Positions 12,007-60,859 are shown, numbered from the stretch's first letter. The stretch: DNA of 64,000 nt from Ascidiella aspersa (GCA_963924565.1 OZ004610.1:496001-560000), one strand, 5' to 3'. Notes: generated by a model from the letters alone, not told the origin. Program-made: numbers and translations.

Positions 12007-13993
12007 GTTGTAACCAAGTTTTCAAAGGTAGTTAATATTTTTTACGATTACAAAATGTGCCTGCTCATTGGCTGGAAAGTCCGTTTTAATAGGTTTGTTT
12101 ATTGCTAAACAAAAACACATTTTATATATTTATGTGTTTTAAGTTTCTAAAAGTCGCTTTTTTGATAAATACATTCCTACTTGTTCAAAGTTCATTATAT
12201 GTTTTTATTAAAAGCATTATAGCAATTACATTTGGTACGAACTAAAATATTATAGGCTATTGTCGTACTCTTATTGTTTTTCTTGTGTGGAACTTAATTA
12301 GGAGACAATCTAATCACACATGACAACTCAATGTAACTGCCATAATATAAAAACTAAAGAGTTCAATTGTTGCCAATTGTTAGAGGCTGCAGTGTGTTAT
12401 TATTGTTTATTTGTTTTTTAAGTATATTGGCCCATACGCTTGGCAATAGTCAAATCCTATTGCAATTATATTTTTTTGTGTAGTATGTTGGTGCAATGTT
12501 GTCACACTGGGGTAAAAAATATTGTATACATTCAGGCCCTGGTTTGTTTATAATAATAGTGATATGATGTGAATTTAACATATTTGTTGAAAGACTGATT
12601 ACATTTTAAAGCATAAATTTGCTAAATTAGGAAATTAGTTTACAAAAAATTTTTGATATAGCTTTAGAATGTAGTGCTATTTAATAAGATAAAATCAAAA
12701 TGAAATTTGAAATGCCTTCAGGTACACTAAAATCACTGTTAAGGGTATCATGCTTTTGAATAGTGTTTTAAGATTACTTGATGTGTGATATGACTTTAAA
12801 ACTTGAGTATTGTCATTTATTTTTCTGTGTATTCCTGTATTCAGTTGCCATTGCATAGTGTTCAAACCATCATTTTTAACCGCGGCATGGAGTATTTTTG
12901 AGGGCTGCCAGCATATGAAATTTAAATTATATCCAGTTAAAGCTCAAATTTCTAGTTTTCATTATGACTTGAAAGATCTTCCTTTGAGATGCTTTGTAGT
13001 TTATTTTTCTGAAACATTAATTGGTGGGCCACAAATTGTTAAGAGCTTATTAAAGGGGGTCCTTAGCCATTAAAGGTAGAGAACCACTGGTTTAAAATTA
13101 AACGAATGGTGGTAGCTTTATGCTAAATAAGTGTGTATCTTTATGTAATCAAATGCTTTATAGAAGGTTTTGGTCTGCTTATGGTTTGCCGAAAGCAATA
13201 AGAAAGCAATGCAAATAAATTATCTAGGAGTTGCTTTTCTGTTTTCCATTCTTTAAGTTATAATTTTGTTATGCTACTATAACAAAATCATAATTTTGTT
13301 ATGCTACTATAACAAAAAATGGGTTCGTCCAGCTTTTTATCTCCCAACATATTTCACAGCATAAAGCTTACTTCTGCATTGATTTAACACTAACCACTCA
13401 CCCCTTGTATAAGGTTTAATGTTTAAGTAAATCTTTCCACTGTTATCTTCTATCTTCATTTCTTCTTTGAGATTAAACCATTTCGTATTTAATGCACTAT
13501 TGTATTTGCTTTACTTTGTTGATTGAGATTTGCATTTTTGCCAATATTTTTATTGTGGACATTGTTTGTGGAAATACATAAGTTTGTTCATATGATTTTT
13601 TGCATTTTTTCTTAGTCCAATATAATTAAAAAGGAAAAAAGTTTGTTGATTCCTGCTCCAGCCCAGGGGCTGTTAAACCTTTCTTTACGCAGGCTCCCAA
13701 AAAACTTTTTGGTTCGCTTGGACCATGGTGGGTAAGACGACGTTGTAAATTAAGGCATTAAACAAGCTAACCTAGAAACCTAAACAAACGTGAAAATTAA
13801 AATGAGTCTAAGAACACATTCAAGGAGAAAACGCCAAAGTATTTTTTTTAATTAACGTCCTATGGCTTTAAAAACTTCTTTCATTGTATAAAACCACACA
13901 AACATTTTGATTCGGCTTCCATGGACCCCTAAACTAGTCCACCTTACCGCAAAAAGACTCACGGAATCCAGTTTAAGGACCCTTACTCTAGCC

Positions 13994-14323
13994 CAGCGGT
14001 TCCCAAACTGGGGTCCATACAGCAATTTCAGAGGGTCCACAATGAGAATTATTCTTTAAAGCTTTAAAGCAGTTTCAGAGGGTTTGCAATATACAGCAAC
14101 AAAAGTGATTCGATTCTAAATCTTTCTCGTGTACATTTGATGAGTTAATTGCAGCAAAACAAGTGCACCCATCCTATTAAACGCTTGTCGTATTTGATAG
14201 TTTTTGCTTTTTCGTTCTTCGGTGAGGTTTTTGCATTTTTCTTCTAGCATTCTTTGATTTTCATAGGGCCACGAAATATCAAGACAATTTCACAAATTTT
14301 TTAGAATAGTTTGAAAACCGCTG
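13994..14323. mobile_element. hAT-type MITE
   Basis: TIR CAGCGGTTCCCAAACT / AGTTTGAAAACCGCTG; TSD CTCTAGCC / CTCTAGCG (7 of 8 match). Confidence 0.8.
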
Positions 14324-14893
14324 CTCTAGCGCAGCCTCTGGCATTTGATAATTATTGTAAACTATTCCGGTAGATAGCGTTACGAGTCACTTGAATTACC
14401 TCGTTAAAAGCGTTTAGTGCAAAACGTATTTTTGTACAAATAACGAAAATGAAAAAGCGTTTCAAAAACACAGGAAAAGTGAACTTTTTAAGTAACTCGG
14501 TAATTTAGTTTTTCTATTTGTACTTTATACACAATGTACCTTCGTGTATCGAGTGAAAATAAATTGTCATTGTTAATCGTAACGAAAGAACTTTAGGCTT
14601 TCAATTTCAGAACTTTTCACAAACTATTTTTCTTTGATTATAAGCTTTTACCGACTTAATGCATTTTAAATACAATATCGACTAAAACCGGCGTTCAAGG
14701 AAAATATTTAAGAAATGGTTGTTGTAATTAAGATCTGTGTTAAGTACGGGTTGATTTCTGGTAGAAATTCGCACGAAGCATTTCCAAAACAACATTTTGA
14801 ACCTTACGCATATCTACAAAAAACAACATTGTGAAAAATCTCAGGCCTGCAAAAACGTTAACAAAGTATAACAGAAGCTTTTTGGATGAACTT

Positions 14894-17800
14894 CTACTCG
14901 TCGCCATCTTCTTCAACTTCAACGTAAGGAGGAGAGAAAGGATCAGTGATGTTCTTGCTCTTCAAACCTCCACCTCCAGAAACTTGGCACAAGATCGACG
15001 TGACTCCTTCCACTTTCTTGTCTCCCATGACGCCCCGTATCCAGGTGGTGTAAGGGAAGACAGCCGTGAAGACTGCTGGTTGCTTGGGAGTTCCACAAGT
15101 CGCTCCTCCTGAACTTGTGATCCCGGTCAAGTAGAACCCGGAGCTGCAGGTAGGGCCTGGTCTTCTGTATTTTTGGGAACAGAGGAGAGGTCCTCCCATA
15201 TCTCCCTGGAACAATAATTGTTTTCGTTGTATTCTCTCAATTTCACAGAACGTTTTTTAATGCATTTTACTCCGAAATTTACTTTATTAAAATTTACCTT
15301 CACAGAAATCTTAACTGGTTTATCTGGAAATATGAAAATTTATTTTATTTGATCAGTTTTTACTGTTTTGCTTATCTAGACATTAGTTTTATTTCATTAA
15401 TCTTCACACATTTTTAGTCTGCAAAATACCGTAAAATTTGGTTTTTTTTAACTCGCAGCATTTGATGCAAAAACTCATACAATACTAATTGTTTTTTACA
15501 AACTTACATAGCAGGTGTCTGTCTCTTTGTTGGGTCCGTGCCCGCATATCTTGTCGCTAGCAACCCGGTCCCTGAAGTGGCCGGCACAAGCGGTTTTTGA
15601 AATTCCTGTGAATACTGCTTCCTGTAGCAACGTGGCTGGCTTGAGTCTGTTCGAGTCTGAACAGAAAATACGCCGCCAAATCGCCATTTGTTTCTCAATG
15701 TGGCAAGTTTTTGTTTAAAATACAAAACACACGAAAGAAATTAATTTACTTTTGTCAACATAAAGAGAAAAAAAACTTGTCGTTAACTAAGAAAAACAAA
15801 GGTTTAAGAGAGTTTATGCTCATGTTACACAATTTATAATAGCGATTAAATGTTTGCGAATCGTCTTTTAAGTTATTGCAATGTAATTTTTACGCATACA
15901 TGCCAGATGCTGACTCGCAGGCATTTAGATTCGCGACAAATGGAGGATATTCAGTATTTTAATGTTTTTAAACGTAATTGCTGTAGGTTTTACTGAGATC
16001 AAGTTTAAAGCTTGTGCTTGTAACGCGTCAAGTTATCATAATTGTGATTATCGGTGTACCGATACTTGATATTTCGGACAAAACACATGGCCGCCTAATT
16101 AAAACCATGTGATGAATATATATGCCCAAAAAAGCAAAATTTATTCAATTAAAAAGCGTATATTTTTTAGGGTACTTTTTGAACAATTTCTTAAGTATTT
16201 GGCTTAAATTTTGAGTAAGATCTTTAATTTTTAAATAACGTTTTCCTAGAAATTTACTTTTCTTATTAGAAAGCTTAACGTTAGAAAATTGGCAAAATAC
16301 AAAATTATTTATTATACGACTAAAACCGATACTAACACTTGTCATCGGCTTCGATTTGAATTATCGGACACCCCTATTCATGACGTCATAAAGGACACGC
16401 AAGCAATGCCGACGTCATATGTCGATAATGACGTCACGTCCCAAATACAGAAGTGACGTTTCTTTGACGTCACTTGCGAAAATAAGAGTTTGTTATTGCA
16501 GAGATACGGTTGTTTGCCGAGCTATTTGTTCATAACTTTGTTGAATATTAACAAATCGTTGAGTATTTTTCGCAAGACTAAATTTAATAAAATTCTCAGC
16601 CTTAAGTCGGTTGTTTTTTTAAATTTAATTGAGATTATCCATTTTTCAGCCTGTCAGCAGCATTAAAATATACACTTTTGAAAAACCAAATGTCTTGCGA
16701 AACTAATGTAGATAGTAATATTTTTGGTTTATACGACCAAGTGAAACGCCAAATTATTTTTGTACACCATTTTGTTCGGCCTTATCAAAGCTTTGTTTGA
16801 ATTTGCGCACTTGATTCAGCGGAGGTTGTTTTTCCCGCTCACAAAGTGTTAAATATGCAATCAGTTTTGATCCGGACGCCAAACCTTCAAGGTGGGATTT
16901 AAGCCGCTCAGTTTTAATGAAGTTTGGACCCTCACGTTGCCACAAGCCGCAGTAAATCAAACAGAGGAGTAATGCAATAAGCGAGGACACTTTACATGAA
17001 CTTTTAAGCGCGGATAATCCACTACATAAGGTCGCTGAAATTCTGTTGATTCGATGAGGTTTTAGGTCGGGCGTGGTTCGCCATTTCTGTGTTTTTCAAC
17101 CAAACAGGATCAGCAAATTTTACAAACAGGGGCGACTTAAATGTATCAAAGCCGTTTTATTCCCCAACTCTAAGTGCTACCTTGTTTAAAATCACGCGTG
17201 TTTGAATTGTTTTCTAAGTCATTAAACAGATGCTAGCAAAAGGCGATTTTTCCTCATATAAAATAATCTGCCTGAATGCGAATGGGTATAAACAAAATAT
17301 TCTGGCTGTACATCATTTGTTATAAAATATTAAACCAGTGGTTCTCAACCTTTTTTCTTTCGTGGCCCATTTAGGTTGCAAAAAAATACTGTGGCCCAAT
17401 ACATTTTTATTAAAGAAAAAAACTGTAAAATAGGTTTAGAACACAACACAACAGCAGAACGTATTTCAAAACAGATTATTTATTCAACCGTGCATTAGTG
17501 AGATACTTGCGGCTAAACAATAAATTTACATTCCTTTTTAATTCTTCCCCAAGCCATTATTCGTGTAAAATTAAATATAGTGACACAAATAAAACTAAAT
17601 CTAGCTTTTTTAAATTTTAAATTGGTCCTCAAATGTTCTTATGTCCTACCAATGGGCCATGGCCCATTGGTTGAGAACCGCTGTATTAAACTGAGCACGA
17701 AAAACAAGTTTCTATCGTGCTTTTTTAGAAAACGTAACCCAGTAAATTATTATTTATAAATCGTTGGTCAGGTGAAAAGGTGCCTCATAAAATTGGATTT

Positions 17801-20800
17801 TACATCTTTCGACTTGTGATTGTTTTTTTATTGACTTTTTTTCGCTAATTTTCCGTAATGTTTTGCCGCAAAACGGGAGACAACAAGTTATCTGATCGCG
17901 TCAGCCTACTTCGCATTCCTACAAACCTCAAAAAGCTTTAAATATTCAGGAGAATGTCGTTAAAAATATCCACACCGGCCAAATAAAGTGCTTTGATGAA
18001 TATCGCAAGTCTGTTTCAGCCAGGGAAGTACCAAGTGTCTCTTTGTGGTTTTCGAAATCCAAGTAATTTCCTCGTTTATTCAGCTTGTGGTCGCCAGTTA
18101 GAGCAACTGGGAACCTTTTCACAGCGCAAAGTCATGGAGGAATCCAAAGAATCTCGTTTTTAATCGGCTTTGTGCAAACCATTTTTCTCAAGCCAGGTTC
18201 CTCACAACAAATCCTATTGACACTTGCGTCGATAATTCCAAACAAAGGTCGCGCGTCAACAGACAATTAGTGCGCGCTTTGCATTGTTTACGTAACAAAG
18301 CGTGTCATGAGGACGCAAATTTTCGTCATCGGCTTGAAATAGCGTCTTAGCTCGCCTTCAACATTCGATTCGCGCTACTCAACTGTTACATCACTAACCT
18401 TCCTCAATACTAGTATGACGTCACAGTAAAACCGCTCATTTAAACTTAAATAACCCATTTTTTGGCACGCAAAGTTCGAACAGCCTTAGGTTTGTTTCCA
18501 GCGTGCGTTTTATAGTTTACAGTTCATTGCAGCAAAACCCGAAAAACTTTGAGTCAAACTTTGAAAATTTAAATGAAAAGATGTTGGTACTGTATTGGTT
18601 CTGCACTTTGCACTGTTTAAATTAAACCGAATATAGGCTGCCCTTGTTTTAGAAAAATATTTCTCATAATATTCGTTTTTCATCGTTTATAAAACCATCA
18701 TGTAATTTCCTGTTGTGTTGTCCCTGTGCGGCGAAATGGACAGAATTTAGCGAGCCACTAAATGTTTCAGGCTTTGTGCCAATTTTGTTACGATTCACCT
18801 TTTATTGATTATATTTGCCATTTAAAAATAATGTCATGCCGACCCTTGTCCACGCGAATTCAAAAAATACTTTTAGGAATCCACGATGAAAAACAGTTTC
18901 CCTGTGCTATAGGACTATAGGTATGAAATCCTGATTAAGTTGAAAAGCATAACTTCGTCCTTTTTTGAAAAATCGGCGAGTACTTTTCAATATCGTACGA
19001 ATATTCAAGCCCATATGGAAGTAGAAACATTTGAAATGTTTTGAATGTCTCGTTATTCACTTTCAACATCTGATGTTGAAAAATAAAAACAGATATTCGA
19101 CGTTCAGAATGCAACCTACTTCTAAATTAGCTTTCATATCGCTACTCAACATCTAACTAAATCCTCCAAACACTGTGTCCCAAAACTAGATCTTTTTTAT
19201 GGTCTTATTCCGACGATTATATTATTCTAACTTTGTTTATCGCTTGAAAAGTATGATTTTACTCACCAACGGCTCCATACCCAGTCGCAATGCAGTCGTT
19301 AAGTTGAACTCCCATCTCCATCTCCCTCCAGTCCCTGTCAGGATGCTGGGGCAAGCAAACCACGTTACGCCTCGGTTCCCGTCCTTTTAGCTTGATCATT
19401 GCGAGGTTGGCGCCAGAGAAGACCGCTGGAGAGAAAACATGACTAAATATGGACTTTAAAAGTTGTTTAGGAGTTTTTTGAGGTTATTGGTGATAAATGA
19501 CATTACTATATGTGGACGTAGTTTTTAATTGTTAGGAAAATATTGGTAAATTACTTATGTGAACTGATTAAATGATTGTTTTTAGAAAAAAGTAAAAAAA
19601 GTAAGAATGGCATTGACATGTGAGGACACATAATATGTCTAGTTAAAAACGGTATCTTTTAAAACTGGTTATTTGGTTCAGATTAAGGTTTGTGTTAGAG
19701 CTTTATTTCTCACATGAATCTGCGCACGGGTTCTCTACAACCGACGAAGCGCCGTGACTTCTTCGATTCTTCTCTTTAATATTTGTTGTGTTCCAAACAC
19801 CGAACAACACGGTCACTTTGCGGTAGTTCCTGAAAGTAATAACAGAAATCTTAAATTCATTACTCTAGAGCAGTGCTTCTCAAACTTTGTGCCTCGAAAG
19901 AATTAATTTCTTGTCCTGATTTGTGCCGCGAATTTTTTTTTAATTTTGCAAAATAACCTATTTCCATACCAAATGTGCAAGTTAAGTAATAATTGGAATG
20001 TTACACTCACGACTAAGGGTACGCAATTATTTTTGACAGGGCCACATGAACTAAAATTGTCCTGTAAGGCAAAAGAAGATGTGAAATACACATAAAATAA
20101 TGTATGATGCCTTCTAAAGTAAAAGAAAGCTGTCAATATCCAAAGTGGAATTTGTTGAATAACAAATGCTAAAATCAGACAAAATCGTAAAGTCCTACAT
20201 TTGTTACGTATTTGTTACATTGTTACATTAATGTTACGTAATAATCTCCCGAGTTAATAGAAAACTGTAACATTAAGAAATACTTTGCGACCCACTGGTT
20301 GGGAAGCACTTCATTTATACGATAGCTTGAGTAACTTACTTAATGCATTGAGTGGCGGTAAGAACCCACTTCGGGTGCACCAGCACTCCCCCACACAGAA
20401 AGTACTGTCTTGGGTTGTCGATTTTTTGGGTCACGATCAGCGCCTGCCATGGATAGCGGTTTGGTACCGTGGCCTTGCCTCCGTAGATTTCTTGAAACAA
20501 ACAAAATTTAAAATGAATTAATCTTTCAATTCACAGTTAAATTTGTTGGCAGAACTGTAAGGAACAACCAACATGTTGTTGTTTTTGTGTTTTTGCCTTT
20601 AAAGATTTTTTGAAATATGCTGAAAAAATAAATTTAAAGTTAAATTAATCGTTTAATCACGAAGGGAAAGTAAAAAAGGCCCCCAAAAAATTGTAATGGA
20701 CAAACGTTATGTTTTTTTTTGCGTTATGCCCCCAAAGATGTCTTAAAATATGTTGAAAAAATATTTAAATTGAACTTTAGTCTTTTAATTGCCAGTGAAA

Positions 20801-32900: not shown

Positions 32901-33984
32901 GCTAGCTTCGCCATCGCTGCACACTTCAACGTATCGCTTAAAACTTGCAATATTTATCGCACTTGCTGATCTTTTATCTCCATATTTGACATTTATATTT
33001 CGCGTTTTATTTGCTTTGACTGGATAACAGAACAGTTTGCAATGTTTACTTGGTTGTCGGCATAGAAAGGTCAGTTTGTAAATAAAATACGTTTCATAAA
33101 AATGCTAAAAACTTTCCACGGAACTATTGTACTTTCCATGAATATTCTTCAATAACAATTTTTTTTGTAAACAGTTTAGATAAAAATCGTTTTTTATAAA
33201 CCGCATTGAACGATAATGTTTAGTGATTAAAATTATTCTAGATGTTAAATAACATTCTAGTGTATTACCACAGTTTTGTGTGCATTCTGTTTAAGTTTCT
33301 TTTTATCGAAAATAATGTGTTGTTTAAATATTTAAATGCGAAAAATCTCTGCCAAAATTAGCAAAACGTAATTCAAGTTTAAAAATTCCTGGTCGAACAG
33401 AATCAAGTTTAATTTTTTTTAACAAAATAAAACATCTTCCCATAGGTGTCGCACTGGCGCCATTTTGTTTAACTTTTCATTAAGTTTTGAAAAAATAACT
33501 TTTTTTAAGTACTATGTCCGGATAAAACATAAAAACTTATAAAATAAGACATCGATGCTTTTGTCTGAGCTCTGATTTTATTCCTGCATTCTGTATCCAA
33601 CTTCAAAACCGTAAGCTATTTTTCTAACATGTGTGTGATGACACCAAACATTTTATTTGACAATTTTAAGGGCGTAATTTTTAAAATGATGTGAGCCGCC
33701 ATTTTTATGCTTAACGCTAAAAATGTAATTGTACTTAAATATTTTTTAGTATTTAAGATCAGATTGTGACGTCATTCTAGTGTTGCTTGTTCAACATTTT
33801 GCTGCAAGTTTATCACCGTTATTTATAATTTTTTTGCAGAGTTTGCAACACGTAATACGAAATATGCAGAAGCACATTTGTACTTGACATTTCCACTATT
33901 AACAAAAACAAACCAAATCTCGCATCCTTAGTTGGTTTGCACGCAAATTTGTAATACAAATAGGTTATTTAACACAGTGAGGAT

Positions 33985-34822
33985 ACCGATGCTACCACTT
34001 GGCATCGGGTATCGGCTCCGATCCGATATTATCGGACGACTACCGATACTAACACTTTGCATCGGGTATCGGCTCCGATCCGATATTATCGGACGACTAC
34101 CGATACTACCACTTGGCATCGGGTATCGGCTCCGATCCGATATTATCGGACGACTACCGATACTAACACTTTGCATCGGGTATCGGCTCCGATCCGATAT
34201 TATCGGACGACTACCGATACTAACACTTTGCATCGGGTATCGGCTCCGATCCGATATTATCGGACGACTACCGATACTAACACTTTGCATCGGGTATCGG
34301 CTCCGATCCGATATTATCGGACGACTACCGATACTAACACTTGGCATCGGGTATCGGCTCCGATCCGATATTATCGGACGACTACCGATACTAACACTTT
34401 GCATCGAGTATCGGCTCCGATCCGATATTATCGGACGACTACCGATACTACCACTTGGCATCGGGTATCGGCTCCGATCCGATATTATCGGACGACTACC
34501 GATACTAACACTTTGCATCGAGTATCGGCTCCGATCCGATATTATCGGACGAGTACCGATACTACCACTTGGCATCGGGTATCGGCTCCGATCCGATATT
34601 ATCGGACGAGTACCGATACTAACACTTGGCATCGGGTATCGGCTCCGATCCCATATTATCGGACGAGTACCGATACTACCACTTGGCATCGGGTATCGGC
34701 TCCGATCCCATATTATCGGACGAGTACCGATAATACCACTTGATATCGGGTATCGGCTCCGATCCGATATTATCGGACGAGTACCGATACTACCACTTGG
34801 TATCGGATATCGGCTCCGATCC
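33985..34822. repeat. 57-bp tandem minisatellite, about 15 copies, internally palindromic
   Basis: Unit CCGATACTA(A/C)CACTT(T/G)GCATCGGGTATCGGCTCCGATCCGATATTATCGGACGA(C/G)TA, seen as 19-aa periodicity in three ORFs. Confidence 0.97.
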
Positions 34823-36488
34823 AAAATTAGCCGATTTATAACTTTCTAAAAGATTATTGCAATGAAACCATTTGAGAAAGTGCGACATTCGCTGCGCTAA
34901 AGCAAAGAAATCTAATTTTGTGAAATGTCACTTTAGCTGATTTAGCAGCTTTTAAGCGATAAAACAGCAATTTTATGTAGAAGATCCACTCAGTCACGAT
35001 TATGTACGTCATTGTAAACAAGGCGGAATACATAAATCGTACTAAAGCAGCAAGAATATCATAAGCTATGGCGACGCCACTCGGGTTGCGACCCACAGGC
35101 TGGAGACCACTGAAATAGAGTATTTACCAGTTTAATTTAAAGTCGTAAAAAAATAATTACACCCACAATAACCACGATAATGTACGAAGTCCGCCTGATG
35201 TTTTGTCCAAATAAATGTGACAATATAAATATTGGGAAAATATGTTTTTAATAGCATAACATTTTACTAATGCCAAAACGTTTGCACTACGTGTCACTAA
35301 ATAGAAATTTAAAATCATGTGATGTGTTTTTAAGCTTCACGCGGTTTTAATCACTGTTGTTTTCCCCAGGTATTGATTCGTCCACATCTTGATTTGTTTT
35401 TGTAAAATGCATCAATATGAATACAGAGCCAATATAATTGACACTTCCTATATACGGAGCATAGCTATACGTTTAAAGACAGGAAGCTTTGATGAAAACG
35501 TACTCAGGATCCTCTATAGTAGCGTTAATCAACGCGGCGCACTGGTGTGCCATGGAAGGCTGCCAGGTGCGCCGCGAGCAAAAGGAAAAAATAATGTATA
35601 GGTCTTATTATATAAAACATATATTTTTGTACTTTCCTATTAAGCTTAGCTCATTGATTCCACAAGCCTTTCAAGTAGAAAGCGCAATAAGACCTACTAA
35701 GCAACAATACTAAATCATATAATTAATCTATAATAGTATAAGTGGGCCTATTAAGACCACCGACATTATACCGCCAAATTCGTAGTAATAATCACGACAG
35801 AATAAGATCTAAAATAGTCCAGATAAGACCTAAACATGTCGAAATAAGTTATTAATCGGAATAAGACTTAAATGACACAATAAAATTTTAATTTATAAAG
35901 GCTGAAGTCCCTTAATAAAATTGCAATCAATTTAAGAGAAATACCGCTACACCTCAAAAAATTCGCCCTCGCTTCGCTCCCAAGGTGCGCCCCTAACTAA
36001 AAAAGGTTAAGAAACGTTGCTCTGTAGGCTCGCGTTATTTCTTTGCGCGCCTTACACACATTTACATACAGACACACAAACATGTAAATGCGGTTCGGAA
36101 GCTAATTAGCTCAATTTGTTTTGTTTCCATCAAATTTTGGTGTTTTTCGACCCTACAAAAATCAGTTTTGGGATTTATACGGGCCATGTGTCGGGTATAA
36201 GAAGCAAAAGCGTTTACAGAGTCTTTAACACAAGAGCGAAAGTAAGTAGAATAATATGTTTATCAAAGCGGTGACAAATTTTCAGTGTTGGCTTCACAAA
36301 GTTACGTAATAACTGGACCTATAAAAGAAGTAACTCTAGGAAACCTGAGGTTATCGTTCGGCGTCGTGCAAAAATGTGCAACTGAAATCCTACTTTAAAT
36401 AGACTCGGGAGATGATGAGATAGCCTGGTGGAAAAGGGAAATAAAAAAGCAATTTTTTACCGGAACCACTGCTTTAATTATATTTTTC

Positions 36489-38627: not shown

Positions 38628-39819
38628 TTAAAGTTGACTTTCTGCCATGACATTCCCTTCTTTATTTCTAAATAAGGCAGGAATCGTCCATTTTTTTAGT
38701 TTCTTCAATCGAACAGTGCACCTGTCTATCAATGTGGAGTAAAGCAAGGGGTTCAATGCATTGTTAATGGGAAGCAAAATACCAGCACTAATGAGATAAA
38801 CATCATTGGGGAGTGGGACACCAGAAACAGCCAAGTAAGCAAGCACACACATTGGGATCCAGCAACAGAAGTCAGTAATAAGCAAACGAGAAATACGTTT
38901 TTTTCGTTTTTTTTTTTTTGCTGTTGGGTTGCTTGTTTCTAGATTTAGCCATTTTGTTACTTCGTATGTAAATGAGTATGTAAGCCACAAGCATGAAAAT
39001 GAACAGCAGAAAGTTGAGTGTGATAAGAAACACAGAATATTGCCAAGAAGCGTCATTCGCAGAGGCGAACAGTCTGGGCATGCAAACACTAGTTTCGCCA
39101 TAATAACCAAATATTCCTTTTATCGGTTGATTATGGATTTTGCTTATTAGCTGAGTGACGTCATGCCAATGAAGTGACGTCATGGTATGTGGTTTTATCT
39201 TATTGGCTAAATCAACTATCTTTTGCTTAGGGACTTGAATCGTTTTGAAAAATCTACTTGAAAACCAAACATAAGAAACAAAATATCCTGAACTGTAATC
39301 AAACAAAGGCAGAAGTGAAAACAAAAATGCAAACAGCCAAACACATGCACATGAAATGTAAATCCTCTTTAACTCCTTTGTTGTGGTGATAAATATTTTG
39401 TACACTGTTGCTAATCTAAACGCTGTCATGACAGCCATAGTACCCGAAGAGGCCATGGTAGCTACAACTCAAAACGAGCAATGAGTTTAACTAACTTATC
39501 TCCGACCCACATAAGCCGATCATCGCAAGGCTCCTTTCGTCCGACGCACTTGATCCTACCGTCAGCCACTTTCGCACCAGGAACCTGCGCGAACACACCT
39601 CTTCGAACCATCGCACATCTTCGCTCCTGGTTTGCAAGTTGTGCAGTTCAATTCATCATTACTCAACTCACAATCCATCCGCACATCACAGACTTAAGTT
39701 TGATTGATGCACTTTCCATCTGGCTTGCTGCATTCGAACTGATCTTGGTCGCATCTTGCTTTAGCTTCAACGCACAAGGCGAGCAACGCACAAACAAAAG
39801 TTAACATTCCCAACAGCAT
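38628..39819 (-). pseudogene. LDLa-containing GRL101/RXFP-like rhodopsin-class GPCR pseudogene
   Basis: Signal peptide MLLGMLTFVCALLALCVEAKA. LDLa repeat CDQDQFECSKPDGKCINQT*VCDVRMDCELSNDELNC with TAA at 39694-39696. A partial second repeat follows, then a jump to TM3-TM7 (YYGETSVCMP, ITDFCCWIP, LLPINNALNPLLYS). Frameshift in the T13 run at 38907-38919. Confidence 0.85.
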
Positions 39820-46079: not shown

Positions 46080-49000
46080 TTAAGTATTTGTAGACTGGGT
46101 TCTGGCATTTTGTGCCGCGTTGGGACGATTCGGCCCCACAGGAATGGGGGGTTGTGGGTGGTTTTGACAGCACTTCAGTTTCTTGACGATCACGCTGTTT
46201 CGGATGCAATAGACGATGAAGATTGCAATTCCCTGCAGCCCGTTGATTGACGTGTGGATGTACGTCAGCACAAGCGACGTCACTGCATTTCCGAGACCTG
46301 TCGCAACAATAAGGCGGCTGCTTATACAGGATGTTGCATTGTCGTTATGTGGGTGGTTTTTCCATAACACTATAAGCAACACTTATCACATATAAGCATG
46401 CAAAATCACTTACAAAAACAACTTAGGCTTTATTATTGCAATGTTTTAATGTGAAAATTACTTAATACAAACATGAAATAACCCTTTATACAAACATGCA
46501 AAATCACTTTGTAAAAAACGTAAAAATCACTTTTTACAATCGTGCAAAAACACTATGTACCTGTGAAGAATCCAAGACCCCAGCTCGATCCGAGAACCAG
46601 CATGACGAAAAAGAAGGAAGAAATGAACTTCTTTGCATTATCCATCTCTTCTCCTTGTCTCCGCTCCTCCCTTCCCCTGAATGGGAGCGCTGCATAAGCG
46701 GCAATGAGAGATGCCAAGAAGTTCACCAGCAGAACAATACCGAGCGGGGCAGTCACCGAGAGAATGTACACCAATGTACCGGGATCCAACCAGCATCTGG
46801 CGTATTTCAGCATTCCCTGTAAAGTGGAACATTATAAGTTTAAAGGCATAAAAATTGAACACCAGTTTATATTAATTCTGTGGTAAAATGTGGTAAATAC
46901 AGCTTCTGTTTTTGTACTCTCTCTTCCATTGTTTTTACCTGTTGATATTGGTGGCATTTTTCGTAGTGGGTGCTGGGCTTTATGTAGTCTCCCGAATACA
47001 GCAGACCGACGGCGAGCGACGAGCCAACTATCAGGGCTGGAACGAACCATCCAAGCGCCAAGAACGTTCTGTTTCTCTTCTCGGGGTCTTGGGTGCGAAA
47101 GCTTGCTGGAAACTTGAAGGCCATTATCATCCGGATTCCATCGAACATGAACCAGTTGCCTAGGAATATAAAGCGTTTTTGTGGATGTTTGATTTATAGG
47201 CTTTTTTTCAGAGAATATTTTTATACTTCATGCACATGACCAAACAGCAATTTAATTAAATCACGTTATTCTGTCACCGTAGATTATTCCGGGATTGGGA
47301 TTTTCACACAAGCATTAATTACCTGTAGCAAGAAGGAAGTAGTGAATGGCGGCCGTTAGAATGAGGCACATGGTGTCGTTGTTTACAGCGGCATCATGAA
47401 CCAGATTGGCCACATGCAACAATGTAAGGGCGATGGCGACGTTAAGCTGGATGAGAGTACGGTCGCTGTTGATCTCGCGTTTGTGAATGTTCAGGAGTAT
47501 GATGGTGGCGACGAGGAACGCGACCGAAATCGATTCGCAAACGTACGAGAAAATCTAGGCAAAGAAATTTTAAGAACATTTAATTAAACCAACCAAATAG
47601 TTATGTTTTTTATTGCCGACTTATCAATATAAGTTTTGAAGTTCACACACAACAACATATAAATGGCACCCTTTTACCTTGACGTCCTGTGTCGAATCGA
47701 CCATCTTTACGGAGAGAAGCACAGCAAACACGGTGTGGTGATCACATTCGCACAAGACCTGGCTCCCGTCCACTCTAGTGCGACAACCAGCGGTGGAGTA
47801 GGCTCCAGATGACTGCTCGATGAAAACACATGTGAGTTGAACCTTGTCCAGCGTGAGACCTGTCGAGGAAGTGTTGGAGGTTTCTCTGGAAACCTTCTCA
47901 CAAACCCTCTTGTCGCTCTCTTTATCTTGAGCGACGTTCCTCGACAGAGAGATGGAACCATTTAGTGTGGAGTTTGCTGTGACGTCGTAGCCCGAGACAC
48001 CGGTGAAAATCATTGGAGAAAGATCCACGAAGTGAGTTGTCGGGTCCTTGAGACTGCTGGAAGCGTTTTGTTGAAACCTGGATGTTGAAGTGTTGTAAAC
48101 ACTCACCTCAAATGCCACCACGACAACATTGGAGCCGTTTTCAGCCGGGAACGTGGAGTTGAAGGAAGTGGCGTTGGTCAACTGGATTAAACCGGTTTCA
48201 GCTTGACCACCGGTTGTATCCAAGGAGTTGATGAGAACCACGATTTTGTCGATGGTTTTGTGAATGGAAATATTGCCAGCCTCGGCCGCCACATTTACGA
48301 GATCGCTTTCCAACGACAGCAACTTGCCCGAACTCACTGAACCGTTGATTAAACCGTCAACCACGTGCTCAATCTTATCCTCAGTCGATGGTAAGCTTTC
48401 TGGAAATTCTGCGAAAAAAATACTTCTATAGAAAACTAACGCCGTTAAAATAGTAGGAATATTAATGTAGCGAAGCATTTTGTCTGTGAAATATAAATTC
48501 CACCCGTGAGTAGGAAAAGTGTTTTTTTTGATAAATGAGCCTATTTTGTAATTAATATGATAAAAATAAGTCTTAAGTTTCATTAAAACGCGGTGACGCA
48601 ACCAAAGCGGTGATATGTTTTTGCGGGGGAGTTGACATGTTGCTGTGAGTTATTGTTGTTGTTTTACCTGCAGCTGCAGAGTTGATGTAACAGGCCGCTT
48701 GTCTAACTTCTGATGGAAAATCATTGTGAAAGTTGGATATATAGACGATGGCGCAAGTGGCTGACTTTGTGGCACCAGCCGGTTCTTCCCGGTCCACTTG
48801 CCACGGCACGTCAGGATTGACCGATGACCCATCTGGCCACTTCAACAAACTCCTGTTGTAAGTCTAATCGCCGCCTTGGTAGGTTAGACCTGTTTAAATA
48901 CAAACAGCGTTGTTTGGTTTTATATATAATCTGTATGGGCTTTTGGTATTCTACCTTTAGTATTTTCTTTTTCTTTTTAGCTTTTATTTAGGTTTTGTCT

Positions 49001-53119: not shown

Positions 53120-55154
53120 GGTGGCCCATAGAAGAGCTCGTGGCACCATTTTCAATAAATAGGTTGCTTTTAGCTTCGCGTTTAAATAGTGGGAAACGCC
53201 GCCACCTTAAATGTAGGCATCGTTATCGTGTGGCGATTACTAATTTAAAGTTTTGCGTCCAAGATTCCGACGGTTGTGTTCACGGGTTTGTCTTGGATTA
53301 AACAGGAACAGTAGGGCAGCTTTTTCAGTTATTCGACGCAATCTAACCGCTTTATTTTTTAGTTTTATCGCCATTTTTTCAGGCCCCAGCATTCTTGTTT
53401 TCCAACTCTACTTTTTTCAACATTATGGACGCGCATAAATAGTTTTGCTTGCTTGGGTCGACCATCAAAACAGCCACAGCATCAACGGCACCTCCAGAAT
53501 ATTTCTTCCAACGTGGTATATGGGTTTGTATTAAGGCGTAGGGCTTTAGGGTTAGCGCCTAGGGATTGAGGGTAGGCTTCAAAAAGTAAATAAACTACTT
53601 TATTTTGCTAACCTCAAATTTGTTTTCCTTGGACTCCCCTGAACGAGCATCACGTGACCAACTGCCCAAGGATGACGTCACACATCTGTGCAGTCAACGT
53701 GATATTAGGACGTCATCAAACTGCCCCTAAACGAGCATCACGTGATCAACTGATTAAGGAGGACGTCATATTTTCTAGTGAACGCTTCATGACGTCATCT
53801 AATGACGAAATACGATGTCTTTGTTTCGGCCTCCCCTTAACGAAGATATAACGCAAGACTTGGTCATCACTGATCACTTCGTTCTGTTTTTTTGGATCGT
53901 GTTTTACCCTGTTTGTGCTGTGCCCTCATTCTCGTGTCCATTGTAAATCACTGTCAATTTTTCAATATATTTAAAAACATTTGGAAACTAACTACAGCTT
54001 TCAAGTCCCCTCGTCGTTAATAGCAAAGTAGGCTAACCCAGTTTTATACAATTTCCTAATGAAAAAGTCACTTGAGAGTTGGTATTACTTGTCTAACTGA
54101 TGATTTGAAATATTCCTATGTGGGCCAGTTTTGAAAAGTACAATGAAATCCAAACAAAAAATCAAATTTGATGTTGGTAAACTGTTTGATAACGCTTATT
54201 TGGTCCCTGATTTAGAAGGCCCCTAATGTGGGTAGACTTCTAAACCTAAACTGCGTCTACAGTTTTACATACCACGTTATTTCTAAAAGTTTGAAAGTTA
54301 TTTGTGTAGAACTTTGGGACAAGAATCGTTCTTAAACTTTCTAACCAAACCCAACTAAAAAAAGATTCTGGCTGAAACAAATTATGGCCGAAAATAAATT
54401 TTTGGACCATAATAATAGTCAAAAATATTGTTCGCGACAAGGGTCACTTATGTCGCTTTTTAAATCATAACATTTTGTAAATAAATAAATAGAAACTTAC
54501 TAAAGTAATTTGTTTAAGTAAAAGTATCTGAGAAAGCCTTTAAACAAAAATTGCTAGTAAAAGACGGGCCTAATTCAAGGTTTGTCAAATACGAATTGTA
54601 GGATGCTTTAATCAGTTTTAAAATGATTGTTTACACACCCGATAAAAATCAATGCATTGCAAACTCTGAAGTAAATATCATTAGCTGATTCGGAGTTAAT
54701 GGACAGCCTTGAACCACAATAAGTGGTTATGCAAAGAGACTGACCATACTATTTTCAAATAGAAGGCAATAAAAATGTCTTAACTCGAGTATTTGCAATT
54801 TTGGCGCTGCTCTAGTTTTGAATTATTGTGACACAATCTGCTTTAACGTGAAAAAGTTTAAGTAACCCCGTTGTTACCCTACTATGTTTTGATAAATTTA
54901 AATTTCAAGGTAAAGAACTGGAGTTGCAAAAGTGGGAATATTTTCGGCGTTTGAAATCGATCAGCTTTAATGTTATATATATCTCAGATCACTTTTTTGA
55001 ACATATCCGCCAGGACATTTTCTGTTTCTCATACGACCCTCTGCTCAAAATAATTGCCAACCCATAACCTTTTTCTAGCGATCTCCTTTTATAATTGGTC
55101 TGCACCCTGCGACTCCCTCAGGTAGTGAAAAAGCAAAAACAATTATGTGTTCGC

Positions 55155-56490
55155 GTAAGCACAAATGTAAACATTATCACAAGTTCATGTTTCTGGTTGT
55201 TTTTATTGATGATCACACGAATAAACAACGGATCCATGAAGATACTTCGTTGTTACTTCTCGCTGAAAATAAATTACGATTGTCGTGATGACAATACAAT
55301 TATTAGTTAGGTTTAAAAATGAGTAAAATAAATTTTCTATAAATAGGCTCACGGCGAGTTTATTTCTTACCTTTTTTAATTTCTACTCATCTTAATCGAA
55401 ATCGAAGCCTTCAGCTGAAAAGTAATTCATACAGGGTCAAGGGCGTATGTTAAAAAGTGATTTTTTTAATTACGCAAAATACTTGAATTGTTGATTAGAT
55501 AGAGCGTTTTAATCACCAACACATCTTAATTACTGACACTTTATACGCCACTCTGGGCGTACAACTATTACAAAGTGCTGTAACAACTAGTGGCTGTCAC
55601 GCGCGTCAATCTCGACTGTGGTGTTTATAGGCTTTAGTATTAACCACTTATGACGCAGGGAAACCGCTTGGGTCAAAGCAAGGTTCGGGCAGGGAACCTT
55701 GCTTGATCTTGGCGGTGCAACGTAGTTCTGGTGCCACGGGAAGGTTAGGGTGTGTTGTAAAAAATACTTAAATTGTTGATTAGAAGGGTTTAACAACCAG
55801 CACATGTTTTTAGTGACACTTGGCCTTGTTTTTAAACTTATCACGTGTCATACAGACAGGACTTAGGCAAATAACATAAACCAGCCCTGTTTACCTGGGA
55901 TAAATGTACCCCAGGGGTAAATTTAATTGTTTTAGGGGGTAAATCCAAGGATAGGTATTTAAGCTCTGGATATTCTGGTGCCATTTCTTTAACTAACATA
56001 TGCAAAGCGACTTTTCTGCATTGCTTACTATAAAATCTAAAGCACTGTACCAACTTGAATGTGATATTCGTTGTGCATTACCTACTATACTTCCAACTCG
56101 TTTCCAAAAAGCAAGTGCAGCCGTTGCACTGAATATAACTGATGTAATTTGTCATTCGGTGTTTATTAAATAAGCACCACTTTATATATTGGGGGTAGAT
56201 CGGATGTTTATCTTTGTTAAAGCAGTAAAACATACAAAAAACTTTAAAAACCCTGATATAAACGATAGATTAAAGAGGTTTTACCAGAGACACCTTCTAT
56301 TTAATTTTCAAAAGCATAATTTTACATGATACACTATTAACAGTTGGTATATCCTAATACAAATTCATTAGTTATAAAGTTAACACAAATAATTCCACTA
56401 ACACTTAACTTGTTGTCTAAACTTGTCAGTTGTGTCAGTTTAAAATAAAACTGTGTGTCAATTGATAGATTTTAGTTCAATTTATAAGGT
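55155..56490 (-). pseudogene. Inverted paralogue of the 59173 peptide gene lacking a recognisable main coding exon
   Basis: 55155-55262 is the reverse complement of the last exon (59683-59797). 55371-55414 is the exon 3 homologue (AEGFDFD*) with intact AG/GT. 56409-56490 is the promoter/exon 1 homologue, with donor GTAAGT changed to TTAAGT. No signal-peptide exon is seen in between. Confidence 0.75.
55541..55759. repeat. Dispersed hairpin-rich repeat, copy 2, inside the degenerate peptide paralogue
   Basis: Direct-orientation match to 52909-53119. Confidence 0.75.
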
Positions 56491-57110
56491 TTAAACAATG
56501 AACTAGATTTAATTTCGCCTAAAATATGCGACAAGTGTGGGGCGCAACCACAATGGAGTAATAATTATCCCAAATAAACAAACGACAACCAGTACTTACA
56601 GGTACAACGATACATACAATAAATTACCTCTGTAACTGTAGGCAATCTGACTCACGAAGTGAACAGTCAACACTGCTAGTTTTGGCTTCAAACGCCAGCG
56701 CTTAAATAACGCATTCCAGCTGGCGGCAATTAATTTTAGCAGCAATGCGGTTCGGCGACGCTGCGAAAAACAGGAAATTCGGACAATTCACGAAACACGA
56801 TCAGCCAATATGCTGCCAATTTGACGAAAACACACAGGCTGGTGTGACGATTTCAAAATCCACCAGAATATTTCAATTGAATTACCACGGTTTCAACCCG
56901 GTAACAATATGGAGCAAAATGCTACACGAAAAACATTATTTTATTGAAAAAGATTTTGACTTTGAATAAAAACAAATCCGCAATGTTTCTAGAAAATTAT
57001 CTGCTTATATTATTGTTCAGATTTTAAATAAAGAATATAATATAAAATAATTCAGCTATTCAAAGTTGATTTTATCAGCAAATGATTTACTAGAAAATGA
57101 TTTACTTGGG

Positions 57111-58650
57111 GATTTGTTTTTATTCAAAGTCAACTTTGAATTGTTGCATTATTTTATTTTATTTTCTTTATTTGAAATCTGAACAATAATATCAGCAGAT
57201 AATTTACTAGAAAGTTTGGGGATTTGTTTTTATTCAAAGTCAACTTTGAATTGTTGCATTATTTTATTTTATTTTCTTTATTTGAAATCTGAACAATAAT
57301 ATCAGCAGATAATTTACTAGAAAGTTTGAGGATTTGTTTTTATTCAAAGTCAACTTTGAATTGTTGCATTATTTTATTTTATTTTATTTATTTGAAATCT
57401 GAACAATAATATCAGCAGATTATTTCTTGGAAACATTGCGGATTTGTTTTTATTCAAAGTCAACTTTGAATTGTTGCATTATTTTATTTTATTTTCTTTA
57501 TTTGAAATCTGAACAATAATATCAGCAGATAATTTACTAGAAAGTTTGAGGATTTGTTTTTATTCAAAGTCAACTTTGAATTGTTGCATTATTTTATTTT
57601 ATTTTATTTATTTGAAATCTAAACGATAATATCAGCAGATAATTTACTAGAAAGTTTGAGGATTTGTTTTTATTCAAAGTCAACTTTGAATTGTTGCATT
57701 ATTTTATTTTATTTTCTTTATTTGAAATCTGAACAATAATATCAGCAGATAATTTACTAGAAAGTTTGAGGATTTGTTTTTATTCAAAGTCAACTTTGAA
57801 TTGTTGCATTATTTTATTTTATTTTATTTATTTGAAATCTGAACAATAATATCAGCAGATTATTTCTTGGAAACATTGCGGATTTGTTTTTATTCAAAGT
57901 CAACTTTGAATTGTTGCATTATTTTATTTTATTTTCTTTATTTGAAATCTGAACAATAATATCAGCAGATAATTTACTAGAAAGTTTGAGGATTTGTTTT
58001 TATTCAAAGTCAACTTTGAATTGTTGCATTATTTTATTTTATTTTATTTATTTGAAATCTAAACGATAATATCAGCAGATAATTTACTAGAAAGTTTGAG
58101 GATTTGTTTTTATTCAAAGTCAACTTTGAATTGTTGCATTATTTTATTTTATTTTCTTTATTTGAAATCTGAACAATAATATCAGCAGATAATTTACTAG
58201 AAAGTTTGAGGATTTGTTTTTATTCAAAGTCAACTTTAAATTGTTGCATTATTTTATTTTATTTTATTTATTTGAAATCTGAACAATAATATCAGCAGAT
58301 AATTTACTAGAAAGTTTGAGGATTTGTTTTTATTCAAAGTCAACTTTAAATTGTTGCATTATTTTATTTTATTTTCTTTATTTGAAATCTAAACGATAAT
58401 ATCAGCAGATAATTTACTAGAAAGTTTGAGGATTTGTTTTTATTCAAAGTCAACTTTGAATTGTTGCATTATTTTATTTTATTTTATTTATTTGAAATCT
58501 AAACGATAATATCAGCAGATAATTTACTAGAAAGTTTGAGGATTTGTTTTTATTCAAAGTCAACTTTGAATTGTTGCATTATTTTATTTTATTTTCTTTA
58601 TTTGAAATTTGAACAATAATATCAGCAAATAATTTACTAGAAGGTTTGCG
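57111..58650. repeat. 110-bp AT-rich tandem satellite, 14 copies, flanked by degenerate inverted units
   Basis: GATTTGTTTTTATTCAAAGTCAACTTTGAATTG... recurs every 110 bp from 57111 to 58541. Reverse-orientation diverged units lie at about 56958-57070 and 58655-58890. Confidence 0.97.
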
Positions 58651-59172
58651 GATTTGTATCTAGTAAATTTTCTGATGATATTAATGTTCAGTATGAAAAA
58701 ATAAAATAATAAAAAATATTGCAACTACTTGAATTTGACTTTGAACAAAATCAAATGCGCAAAGTTTCCCAGTAATTATTTACTGAAATACTATTTAGAT
58801 TTAAATAAAGGAATTATATCAAATATTTCAACTATTCAAAGTTAATTTTATATAAAAAAACAAATCCTCAACGTTTCTAGTTAATTTTCTGCTTTTAATC
58901 AAACAATTACTGCCATTCATTACATATTTCCACGAACCAAAGTCATATGTTCAACAAACTGAAAAAAATATTATTGTTTGAAACCTTTAAATTGAGCTGA
59001 AATATCTCAGTTGGCACACAGTTTTATTCTGGATTGACACAACTGACAAGTTGAAATAACAAGGTAAGTGACAGTAATTAACATGTGTTAGTGGTTAAAC
59101 CGTTTTAACCTTTTAACCAATCAAAAAAAAAAAAAAAAATTTAAATATTTTGTATAATTCCTATGTTTTCAG

Positions 59173-59530
59173 ATGATCAAGTTTGTTATGATGACGCTTC
59201 TACTTGGCCTCCTACTTCTAGTTGATCAGAGCGAGGGTCAATGGAAAAAAGTCAAGGTTCTCAAATCCATTGGATTTCTGTGCAAATGCAAATACGGTTA
59301 TTGCAAATGCTTGTATAACATTCCTTATTATTGCCATCCGCATGGAGTTCATTATGATCAAGAAGGTAAAGTTTGATTGAAGTTCGGCAAGAACCTAACT
59401 TTAAAACATCGATTTTATGAGCGTAGTTTTGCACAATATATACTTTAATTCAATCATAAAAAATTTGTCAAACAATATAACTTTCTTTCTAGCTCAAAAC
59501 TCCGAAAAACAAGAGCTTGATATCAACTAA
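59173..59530 (+). CDS. Secreted cationic Cys/Tyr-rich prepropeptide, putative antimicrobial peptide precursor, 76 aa
   Basis: 5'UTR exon ending at 59063 (AAG|GTAAGT); coding exons 59173-59365 and 59493-59530; 3'UTR exon from 59683 with AATAAA at 59747. Protein: MIKFVMMTLLLGLLLLVDQSEG-QWKKVKVLKSIGFLCKCKYGYCKCLYNIPYYCHPHG-VHYDQEAQNSEKQELDIN*. Confidence 0.8.
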
Positions 59531-60077
59531 GACGAGCAAGAATTAACAAAGGTAAGTTTTAACTAAATAAAAAGTTTTTTTTAATTTTTAATGATTTCAT
59601 CTTGCTTGATAAGCTTGTTGAAACTAAAGGATTTTTTTTAAGGAATCTAGTTATAATTCTCTAAACACTTATATATTTTCAGATGAATCACCGAGAAGTA
59701 ACAACGAAGTATCTTCATGGATCCGTTGTTTATTCGTGTGATCATCAATAAAACAACCAGAAACATAAACTTGTGATAATGTTTACATTTGTGCTTAATC
59801 TTCGGGTAGAGAGGGTAGATTGTGGTTTCTTGTGAGAAGTTATTCACCAATAGGCAAACCGCCATGCTTTAAATAAAAAGCCATTTGCCCTTGCACTCAA
59901 CTTGTCGAGGAAGTTTTTGATGCAGCGAAATTTCAGATAACCCGGCGTAAAACATTTCATTCTACAGGTCTAGGAATTGGTTTTAGTTTTACTCAAAATT
60001 CCGAGTCCCAAAAATGCCAGAAATAGATATTTCCGCCTGACGTTTTAAGAATGTTATTAAACAGATTGTCCTCAGTA

Positions 60078-60859
60078 CAGCGGTTCTTAACCAGGGGTAC
60101 GTGCACCCCTTGGTGGTACGAATCACCAAAGCAGGGGTACGACATGCAGTGCGAAATTATGTGTTATTTAGGCATATTAGTGATGAATGCGTAATTTACG
60201 AAAAGCAACAACGAAAAAGCCATTAGCAAATCGACTGATTGTTCGTTTTAAATATTGTGGAACATACAAGACTGCTTTTAATGCATACATTCAACACGTA
60301 TGTTATAAATCAGGGCTGCGGAGTCGGAGTCGGACTCGGGACTCGGGACTCGACGGAGTCGGTTTGTTTTGCCGGAGTCGGACTCGGGACTCGAGTAAAA
60401 CCGCGTAAAACTACCCGAGTCCCGAGTCCGACGTGCGCATGCGCAGTATCAAATTTTAAAACTGTTAAGGCGGCAAAATGTAAGTTGTAAAAGTGTAATA
60501 GCAAATGTGAAATATTTTTAAAACATGTAATGCGGGTGGATCAATAATGACACCAATATGAGTGGATTGCAGAAAATCCACCTTAATTTAGTTGCGTAAA
60601 TGGGTAAAATACAGGCTGTAGAGTCAGAGCTGGACTCGGGACTCGACAAAATCTTACATTTGACCGGAGTCGGACTCGGGACTCGGAAGTCGGACTCGGG
60701 TGTATTTTTAACCGACTCCGCAGCCCTGTTATAAATATATTGATTTTAATTCCTATAATTAGAATTTTATTTACTTCTGTTGGCCATTGTAGACATGGCT
60801 ACGAGAAAATTTCATAAAACCTTAAAGGGTACGAGCGCTAAAAAGGTTAAGAAACCCTG
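60078..60859. mobile_element. hAT-type MITE hosting a nested insertion
   Basis: TIR CAGCGGTTCTTAACC / GGTTAAGAAACCCTG; TSD CCTCAGTA / CCTTAGTA. Confidence 0.8.
60311..60728 (+). mobile_element. Intact hAT-type MITE (GAGTCGGACTCGGG family), nested
   Basis: Perfect TIR CAGGGCTGCGGAGTCGG / CCGACTCCGCAGCCCTG; perfect 8-bp TSD TTATAAAT at 60303-60310 and 60729-60736. Confidence 0.93.

Follow-up and report, generated by a model that had tools for sequence, protein, structure and literature searches.

A gene in Ascidiella aspersa belongs to a multicopy family of putative secreted peptides linked to a 110-bp satellite

Does a small predicted gene beside a satellite array in Ascidiella aspersa encode a host-defence peptide, and does it stand head to head with an inverted paralogue, as the initial annotation of this DNA proposed? 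The window is the whole stretch analyzed here, 64,000 nucleotides long (GCA_963924565.1, OZ004610.1:496001-560000; C4:496001-560000 in the 308.6-Mb genome that was searched), and the gene lies at 59.03–59.80 kb on its plus strand. We found that this gene is an intact member of a family of about 15 (at least 15) loci, not half of a lone pair, and that its minus-strand partner is a dead, non-coding relic of a gene of the six-Cys type represented by locus L014. The best reading of the sequences is that the family is a new, lineage-specific and previously undescribed group of ascidian secreted peptides, which are candidates for host defence.

The gene has four exons, with GT..AG at all three introns, and its precursor of 76 residues comprises a 22-residue signal, a 36-residue mature part and an acidic tail (Table 1). 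The mature part contains 7 Lys, 5 Cys and 5 Tyr, carries a net charge of +7 and has the core C-K-C-x4-C-K-C (residues 15–24, CKCKYGYCKC) plus a fifth Cys. Translation, introns and the AATAAA signal all agree with the gene structure, precursor length and composition first described for this locus. The signal would be cut after SEG, with Ser at −3 and Gly at −1 of the putative site, as judged from these two residues and from conservation in the family rather than by a dedicated predictor.

A search of the genome with exon 2 returned 16 matches, and a DNA search with the whole gene returned 42; signal-coding DNA was present in 16 copies and exon 4 in 17, the window's own copy being counted in each. 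Common to the loci are a 5′ untranslated region (UTR) exon, the signal, a phase-1 intron, the acidic tail and a 3′UTR exon. At every locus the signal is close to MNKFVMMALLLGLLLLVDQSEG, and in 14 of the 15 loci exon 2 ends in (D/K)E followed by a G/GT phase-1 donor, the exception being the truncated fragment L005, in which no donor was found. Recognisable copies of exon 3 encode the conserved acidic tail, e.g. AENFENPELDVNQDEQE.

The mature parts, by contrast with these shared elements, are unrelated between classes and cannot be aligned. The A type, WKKVKVLKSIGF-CKCKYGYCKC-...IP..C, comprises the window gene, L002, L003 and the frameshifted L004, and the B type, YKKIPIIFKGL-CKCKSHGCYCKRYIPLC, comprises L006, L007 and L009 together with L008, whose acceptor is doubtful, and the fragment L005. 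Behind the shared family signal, the Pro-rich class (L012 and L013) carries a Pro/Gly-rich peptide (VPNGPPPPQPGPPTGG...) and the His-rich class (L011) an extremely His-rich one (YRHHGHHGCYLQCNHCYYKCPHHHHYHHHH..., with HHGHHG...HHHHYHHHH). L010 represents a Lys-rich class with 5 Cys, and L014 and L016 represent the six-Cys classes. L004, L005 and possibly L008 are damaged.

The signal has 10 invariant residues in all (M1, K3, F4, LLLGLL and S20). Within the mature part, C15, C17, C22 and C24 are invariant across the A, B and L010 types; B-type members and L010 share the CxC-x4-CxC spacing, and L003 has x6. The fifth Cys is found in 8 of 8 A- and B-type members, each with 5 Cys, so that the odd Cys count noticed earlier in the window gene proves to be a conserved property. 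Among A-type genes, nucleotide identity reaches 97% in the signal, 98–99% in exon 4 and 85–97% in exon 1, and the mature part, at 88–89%, is no better conserved than the introns (75–96%). Exon 4 shows 97–99% identity in 10 further copies that are complete or nearly so, some of them with unrelated mature peptides. Replacement changes (N) outnumber silent ones (S) by 17 N to 1 S between L006 and L009 and by 7 N to 0 S between L008 and L005, both being small counts. Although A and B types are only 36% identical, their mature parts have the same charge of +7, balanced by paralogue tails of −8 or −9; the tail of the window gene carries −4. A constant signal, tail and UTRs around hypervariable mature parts that keep their +7 charge, with genes multiplying in tandem and pseudogenes coming and going, are the usual signature of an effector or antimicrobial peptide (AMP) family. 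A Gly precedes the tail in all three intact A-type genes and in part of the B type. An N-terminal pyroglutamate, also suggested at first, is not characteristic of the family, since the three closest paralogues have Q, H or Y at the N terminus.

Transcription was assessed in one same-species RNA run (X3) of unspecified tissue, about 6% of which was read; this gave 20 reads, 95–99% alike and all partly fitted. The exon 1/exon 2 joint 59063/59173 (GT..AG) was present in 11 paralogue reads with 8 starts, and exon 3/exon 4 joints of paralogues were present as well. The adapter boundary within exon 1 (Table 1) suggests a transcript start near 59030. Reads at 59239 and 59241 spell YWKK of L003, and loose read ends spell L014 (SAEKAPIGS), L003 (FFCQC) and a B/C-type exon 3. 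These data indicate that the family is transcribed and spliced in the plus sense, a direction that holds provided that the library was stranded in the usual way. The spliced transcripts proposed as a check of the gene model thus exist for paralogues, none being specific to the window copy. Two further runs, X1 and X2, behave as DNA and may be the assembled sample; their contigs carry 59287–59376 unchanged. At 59194 the contigs show only the family base, but, being collapsed and of high depth, they neither confirm nor contradict the assembly at the I2 and T8 codons.

On the minus strand, where an inverted paralogue had been reported, we found only exon-1/promoter, exon-3-like and exon-4 pieces (Table 1) and duplicated scraps of intron 1. 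Examination of every frame on this strand revealed no signal or mature-peptide exon, and an intact inverted paralogue is ruled out because the coding exon is absent from this copy. The relic is colinear with L014, with identities of 98% in exon 4, 82% in exon 3, 79% in intron 1 and 82.5% in exon 1, and 387 bp holding exon 2 of L014 are replaced in it by 331 bp of other sequence. At C4:362–366 kb, 190 kb off, L014 stands head to head with L002, an A-type gene sharing 86% identity with the window gene, around the same satellite; therefore, the window pair is an inverted segmental duplicate whose six-Cys partner is dead. The head-to-head pair originally described is one duplicated module within a family of roughly 15 loci, and one of its two genes no longer codes.

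The satellite itself was correctly recognised (Table 1). A search of the genome with two units gave 78 matches, all but two of them beside family genes and mostly directly upstream of exon 1, and in an alignment of upstream regions, sequence derived from the satellite continued into a conserved core promoter that contains a TTTAAAT or ATAAAT box. The two matches away from recognised family genes, C3:1698808-1699003 and C1:6943670-6943845, may be further relics. One AGATAA (GATA-type) word occurs per 110-bp unit over 56950–58900, and the variant units at 57424 and 57864 carry TTCTTGGAA instead, a perfect TTCN3GAA STAT-type word; these are short words in AT-rich DNA and no evidence of binding. 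Solo copies of the promoter plus exon 1 (80% identity) lie on the plus strand at C4:411641-411755 and C4:423511-423625, in the ~11.9-kb duplicated unit of the tandem cluster. No donor or coding exon was found behind either of them, and the former is regarded as a promoter relic standing alone. A search of Rfam with 54.8–60.3 kb of the window gave no match.

Table 1. Positions of the window gene, the satellite, the minus-strand relic and the other family loci
Feature	Position	Strand	Evidence or remark
Core promoter, TATA-like TTTAAAT	58986..58992	+	alignment of 14 family loci; block TTGTTTRAAACCTTTAAATTGAGCTGAAAT nearly invariant
Exon 1, 5′UTR only, start approximate	~59029..59063	+	adapter abuts 59030 in 3 RNA reads (paralogue reads)
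Exon 2, first part: 22-residue signal peptide MIKFVMMTLLLGLLLLVDQSEG	59173..59238	+	translation; ATG at 59173
Exon 2, middle: putative 36-residue mature peptide, Q23 to G58, QWKKVKVLKSIGFLCKCKYGYCKCLYNIPYYCHPHG	59239..59346	+	translation
Exon 2, last part: first residues of acidic tail, VHYDQE, and 1 nt; phase-1 donor GAAG/GTAAAG	59347..59365	+	
Exon 3: remaining acidic tail AQNSEKQELDIN, then 3′UTR	59493..59551	+	stop TAA 59528-59530
Exon 4: 3′UTR, AATAAA at 59747-59752	59683..~59797	+	
110-bp satellite, 14.1 units, 95% matches	57106..58657	+	Tandem Repeats Finder
Single inverted satellite unit, relic side	56956..57073	-	inverted repeats, 87-90%
About 2 inverted, diverged satellite units abutting the core promoter of the window gene	58665..58878	-	
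Relic: promoter, exon 1 and 5′ end of intron 1, L014 type	56381..56499	-	81% to window gene; 82.5% to C4:364964-365081
Relic: exon-3-like piece (also delimited as 55366-55408), acceptor and donor, reads AEGFDFD*	55366..55430	-	82% to L014
Relic: exon 4 (3′UTR) copy (also delimited as 55156-55266)	55152..55266	-	97% to window gene, 98% to L014 exon 4
L002 and L014, head to head	C4:362-366 kb		
Tandem cluster of ~8 genes with ~11.9-kb duplication	C4:406-427 kb		
L003 and L011	C4:1237-1245 kb		
Further family loci	C3:3015 kb, C3:7278 kb, C5:33175 kb, C2:7711 kb		
L011, His-rich	C4:1243327-1243491	-	
L013 and L012, Pro-rich	C4:413563 and C4:425441, respectively	+	
L014, six-Cys	C4:365140-365338	+	
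L016, six-Cys	C2:7711314-7711373	-	

The core of the peptide had not been recognised at first, and word, alignment, Pfam, HMMER and full-text searches found no characterised family that matches. A word search of protein libraries with the exon-2 peptide gave no candidate, and the 14-sequence family alignment gave 99 candidates in such libraries, none at E <= 1. A HMMER profile built from nine A, B and L010 sequences matched, among 1.84 billion proteins, only an internally repetitive 619-residue protein, which was judged spurious. In Pfam nothing came near the cut-offs; a weak match to 'Toddler' (E 0.055, four members) is suspected to stem from the signal region. The ESM Atlas yielded no usable match, and four peptide words, looked for in the full text of papers, were absent. 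The protein libraries include Ciona, Clavelina and Styela proteins and may miss small spliced genes, and the orphan status of the family holds for protein libraries only.

The likeliest fold of the window peptide is a cationic β-hairpin stapled by disulfides, which is weakly predicted. With the family alignment, AlphaFold placed strands over CKCK and YCKC (mean predicted local distance difference test score, pLDDT, ~55–56); with the mature peptide alone, it placed them at residues 6–10, 13–18 and 21–26, turning at YG, with a mean pLDDT of 64 and a value of 74 in the best block. The predicted register sets C15 opposite C24 and C17 opposite C22. An N-terminal amphipathic helix was ruled out, the hydrophobic moment of the first 14 residues being no higher than that of shuffled sequences.

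Protegrin-1, RGGRLCYCRRRFCVCVGR, is a β-hairpin with two disulfide bonds (PMC8583803). Its Cys framework, C-x-C-x4-C-x-C, is identical in the core of the window peptide, and both are strongly cationic; the CKC-x4-CKC core, considered unrecognised at first, shares its Cys spacing with a known peptide. The predicted antiparallel hairpin with facing CxC strands would resemble those of protegrin-1, tachyplesin, gomesin and arenicin. Unlike protegrin-like AMPs, to which it shows no sequence homology, the window peptide is Lys- rather than Arg-based and about twice as long (36 residues); it has 14 additional residues at the N terminus, an IP-x-C extension and the conserved fifth Cys. A cathelicidin is excluded: the precursor consists of signal, peptide and acidic tail, lacking a cathelin domain and any Pfam domain, so that the peptide could at most resemble cathelicidins in its action.

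Precursors of styelins, clavanins and mussel AMPs consist of a signal, a cationic peptide and an anionic C-terminal extension, and the window precursor has this layout, as originally stated. Styelins, clavanins and the stolidobranch peptide botryllin are linear, Cys-free and α-helical, whereas the window peptide contains five Cys and has a predicted β structure, and word, profile and HMMER searches of libraries that include Styela and Ciona proteins revealed no homology to them. Halocidin and dicynthaurin of Halocynthia are helical peptides with a single Cys that form dimers through it; the odd, conserved Cys count of the A and B types would likewise leave one Cys that could bond intermolecularly. 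Botryllin is described as a haemocyte product whose pre-propeptide, with a 23-residue signal, is cleaved to yield a mature cationic peptide (PMC9966394). Like the window gene it has an ascidian host, but it comes from stolidobranchs, while the window genome is nearer Ciona.

The six-Cys classes, to which the relic's subfamily and not the window gene belongs, invite a different comparison. Turgencins A and B of Synoicum turgens are antibacterial, amidated peptides with six Cys bonded C1–C6, C2–C5 and C3–C4, the Cys being spaced 3,4,8,2,3 in turgencin A and 3,4,7,2,3 in turgencin B (PMC7024374). When compared by eye, the spacings of L014 (3,4,10,3,3) and L016 (3,3,12,3,3) come near to these, and all of these peptides are Lys-rich. 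L014 also has a Gly between its last Cys, which it directly follows, and the acidic tail. This resemblance is a lead only. At the level of gene families, frog preprodermaseptins, mussel myticins and mytilins, and conotoxins combine a conserved signal and propiece with hypervariable mature peptides. The ascidian family is like them in its near-invariant signal and UTR exons, acidic propiece, unalignable mature parts, tandem clusters, pseudogenes and a local surplus of replacement changes; its sequences are unrelated to theirs, and each of its genes adds a variable array of the family-specific 110-bp satellite upstream.

If the family serves in host defence, the prepropeptide would enter the secretory pathway and its signal would be removed by the predicted cut. 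The +7 peptide would then fold into a β-hairpin with two cross-strand disulfides, C15–C24 and C17–C22 (mature numbering), as in protegrin, leaving the conserved fifth Cys unpaired, so that it could join a dimer or form some other bond. During storage the peptide would be neutralised by its anionic tail, which would be removed at maturation, and the released cationic peptide would act on microbial membranes as an effector. The data show the gene structure, the family with its pattern of conservation, and transcription and splicing of paralogues; signal cleavage, disulfide pairing, tail removal, cell type and antimicrobial activity are what we infer, and we consider the chances of an antimicrobial role for the family to be evenly balanced.

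Several results weigh against this account of the family and of its window member. Structural support is low: the mean pLDDT is 56 and 64 in the two models, a PDB profile search gave only E > 2, and Foldseek on the 36-residue model gave nothing at E <= 0.001 (best E 2.6). The ratio of replacement to silent substitution rates (dN/dS) in the A-type trio is 0.5–0.9, not above 1, on small counts. That some members are non-cationic (Pro-rich) or His-rich is compatible with other roles, and the lack of an amphipathic N terminus counts on the same side. These last points, together with a mature part rich in Tyr, His and Cys, the extreme His content of L011 and the Pro/Gly-rich paralogue, could also be explained by a secreted family with a role outside defence, in metal or redox chemistry in blood cells, in cross-linking of tunic or adhesive through Tyr or dihydroxyphenylalanine (DOPA) and Cys, or as a signal or pheromone. 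The RNA at hand shows family-level transcription only and no sign of immune expression. Moreover, a JAK-type gene places the genome nearer Ciona (48% identity) than Styela (40%), and vanadium accumulators occur among the ascidians of the Ciona side. Metallothioneins, however, are cytosolic proteins with ~30% Cys and no signal, and vanabins have 18 Cys; with 5 Cys in 36 residues, a signal peptide and no Pfam match, the window peptide is ruled out as a member of either group. Its precursor also lacks dibasic sites like those at which neuropeptides are processed, and the combination of constant signal, tail and UTRs with variable +7 mature parts, tandem expansion and pseudogenes fits an effector or AMP family. 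We therefore regard a role outside defence as a real but rather improbable alternative.

Other results weigh against the window copy in particular, and they agree with the view that it is silent or decaying, a young duplicate turning into a pseudogene like its partner; this view is compatible with any of the other readings. No read specific to the window copy was found in the part of run X3 that was read, depth being 0 over 59294–59401, and at 59194 each of the 14 reads has the base of the paralogues (Ala8). The signal has N2I and A8T at positions that are otherwise 90–100% conserved, the codons for I2 (59177) and T8 (59194) being unlike those of every paralogue. The stop TAA occupies the position of TTA in L002 and CAA in L003, which leaves the tail 5 residues shorter, removes its final LDEQE-type residues and halves its charge. 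The head-to-head partner has already lost its coding exon, and other members are damaged, as described above. On the other hand, the open reading frame (ORF), six splice sites, TATA-like box and poly(A) signal of the window gene are intact and its five Cys are kept; only ~6% of a single RNA run was read; and the 59287–59376 segment is unchanged in the X1 and X2 contigs. On balance, decay of the window copy seems unlikely. A chance ORF in repeated or transposon-derived DNA, with no gene at all, would account for the many copies, the flanking satellite and the lack of a library homologue. The window gene is nevertheless more than that, because 14 further, diverged loci keep the frame, the phase-1 donor and intron phase, the Cys positions and the signal, and because the exon 1/exon 2 joint is present in RNA; the canonical splicing of paralogue RNA, the AATAAA and the conserved promoter argue in the same direction. 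A chance ORF is thus effectively refuted, and we hold with high confidence that this is a genuine coding family.

To our knowledge, most of the ascidian AMPs described are linear helices, which come from Ciona and a small number of stolidobranchs, and our literature search found no report of a tunicate disulfide-laddered β-hairpin type or of a large diversifying effector family. A broader and frankly speculative reading of the secreted-peptide family, which we think doubtful, is that the shared cassette (110-bp array, promoter, 5′UTR exon, signal, tail and 3′UTR exon) serves as a chassis for at least five unrelated effectors: a CxC hairpin, a turgencin-like six-Cys peptide that may be a helical hairpin, and Pro-, His- and Lys-rich peptides. 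The family might then be the source of turgencin-type peptides and provide the first disulfide β-hairpin AMPs of a non-mammalian chordate, and the satellite might act as a shared enhancer or as a recombination substrate for duplication and inversion. Should the narrower prediction of a diversifying effector family with a β-hairpin type hold, the family would offer about ten natural, salt-adapted peptide scaffolds, a chordate case of effector evolution with conserved signals and hypervariable peptides, and a tractable system in which a satellite repeat is linked to the promoters of one gene family.

The ascidian origin of the DNA, deduced earlier without knowledge of the source, agrees with two features of the genome. 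Matches to GT2 (C5:19610502-19611038) and GH6 (C5:19613851-19614090) lie on one strand 3 kb apart, and GT2 followed by GH6 is what we take to be the architecture of tunicate cellulose synthase (CesA). In the window, 8062–11157 (+) holds a single frame of 1031 codons that encodes most of a JAK-type tyrosine kinase. This ORF (8062–11154) is 54% identical to a transcript without species name, 48% to Ciona intestinalis, 44% to Clavelina, 40% to Styela clava and ~31% to fish JAK2. By these sequence matches, the genome is that of an ascidian nearer Ciona than Styela and belongs to none of these three named species.

The remaining features of the window lie outside the peptide locus. A 57-bp minisatellite at 33984–34829 (14.8 copies, 95% matches) is open in several frames on both strands. 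Long ORFs at 38628–39456 (-) and 47624–48601 (-) resemble membrane-receptor exons, and in the latter a CECDHHTVFAVL motif resembles, by eye, the G-protein-coupled receptor (GPCR) proteolysis site (GPS) at which adhesion GPCRs undergo autoproteolysis. Just downstream of the peptide gene, 60050–60265 is a very high-copy repeat, with a summed contig depth of ~4,000–18,000 compared with ~40 nearby in two DNA runs, and is probably a transposon fragment.

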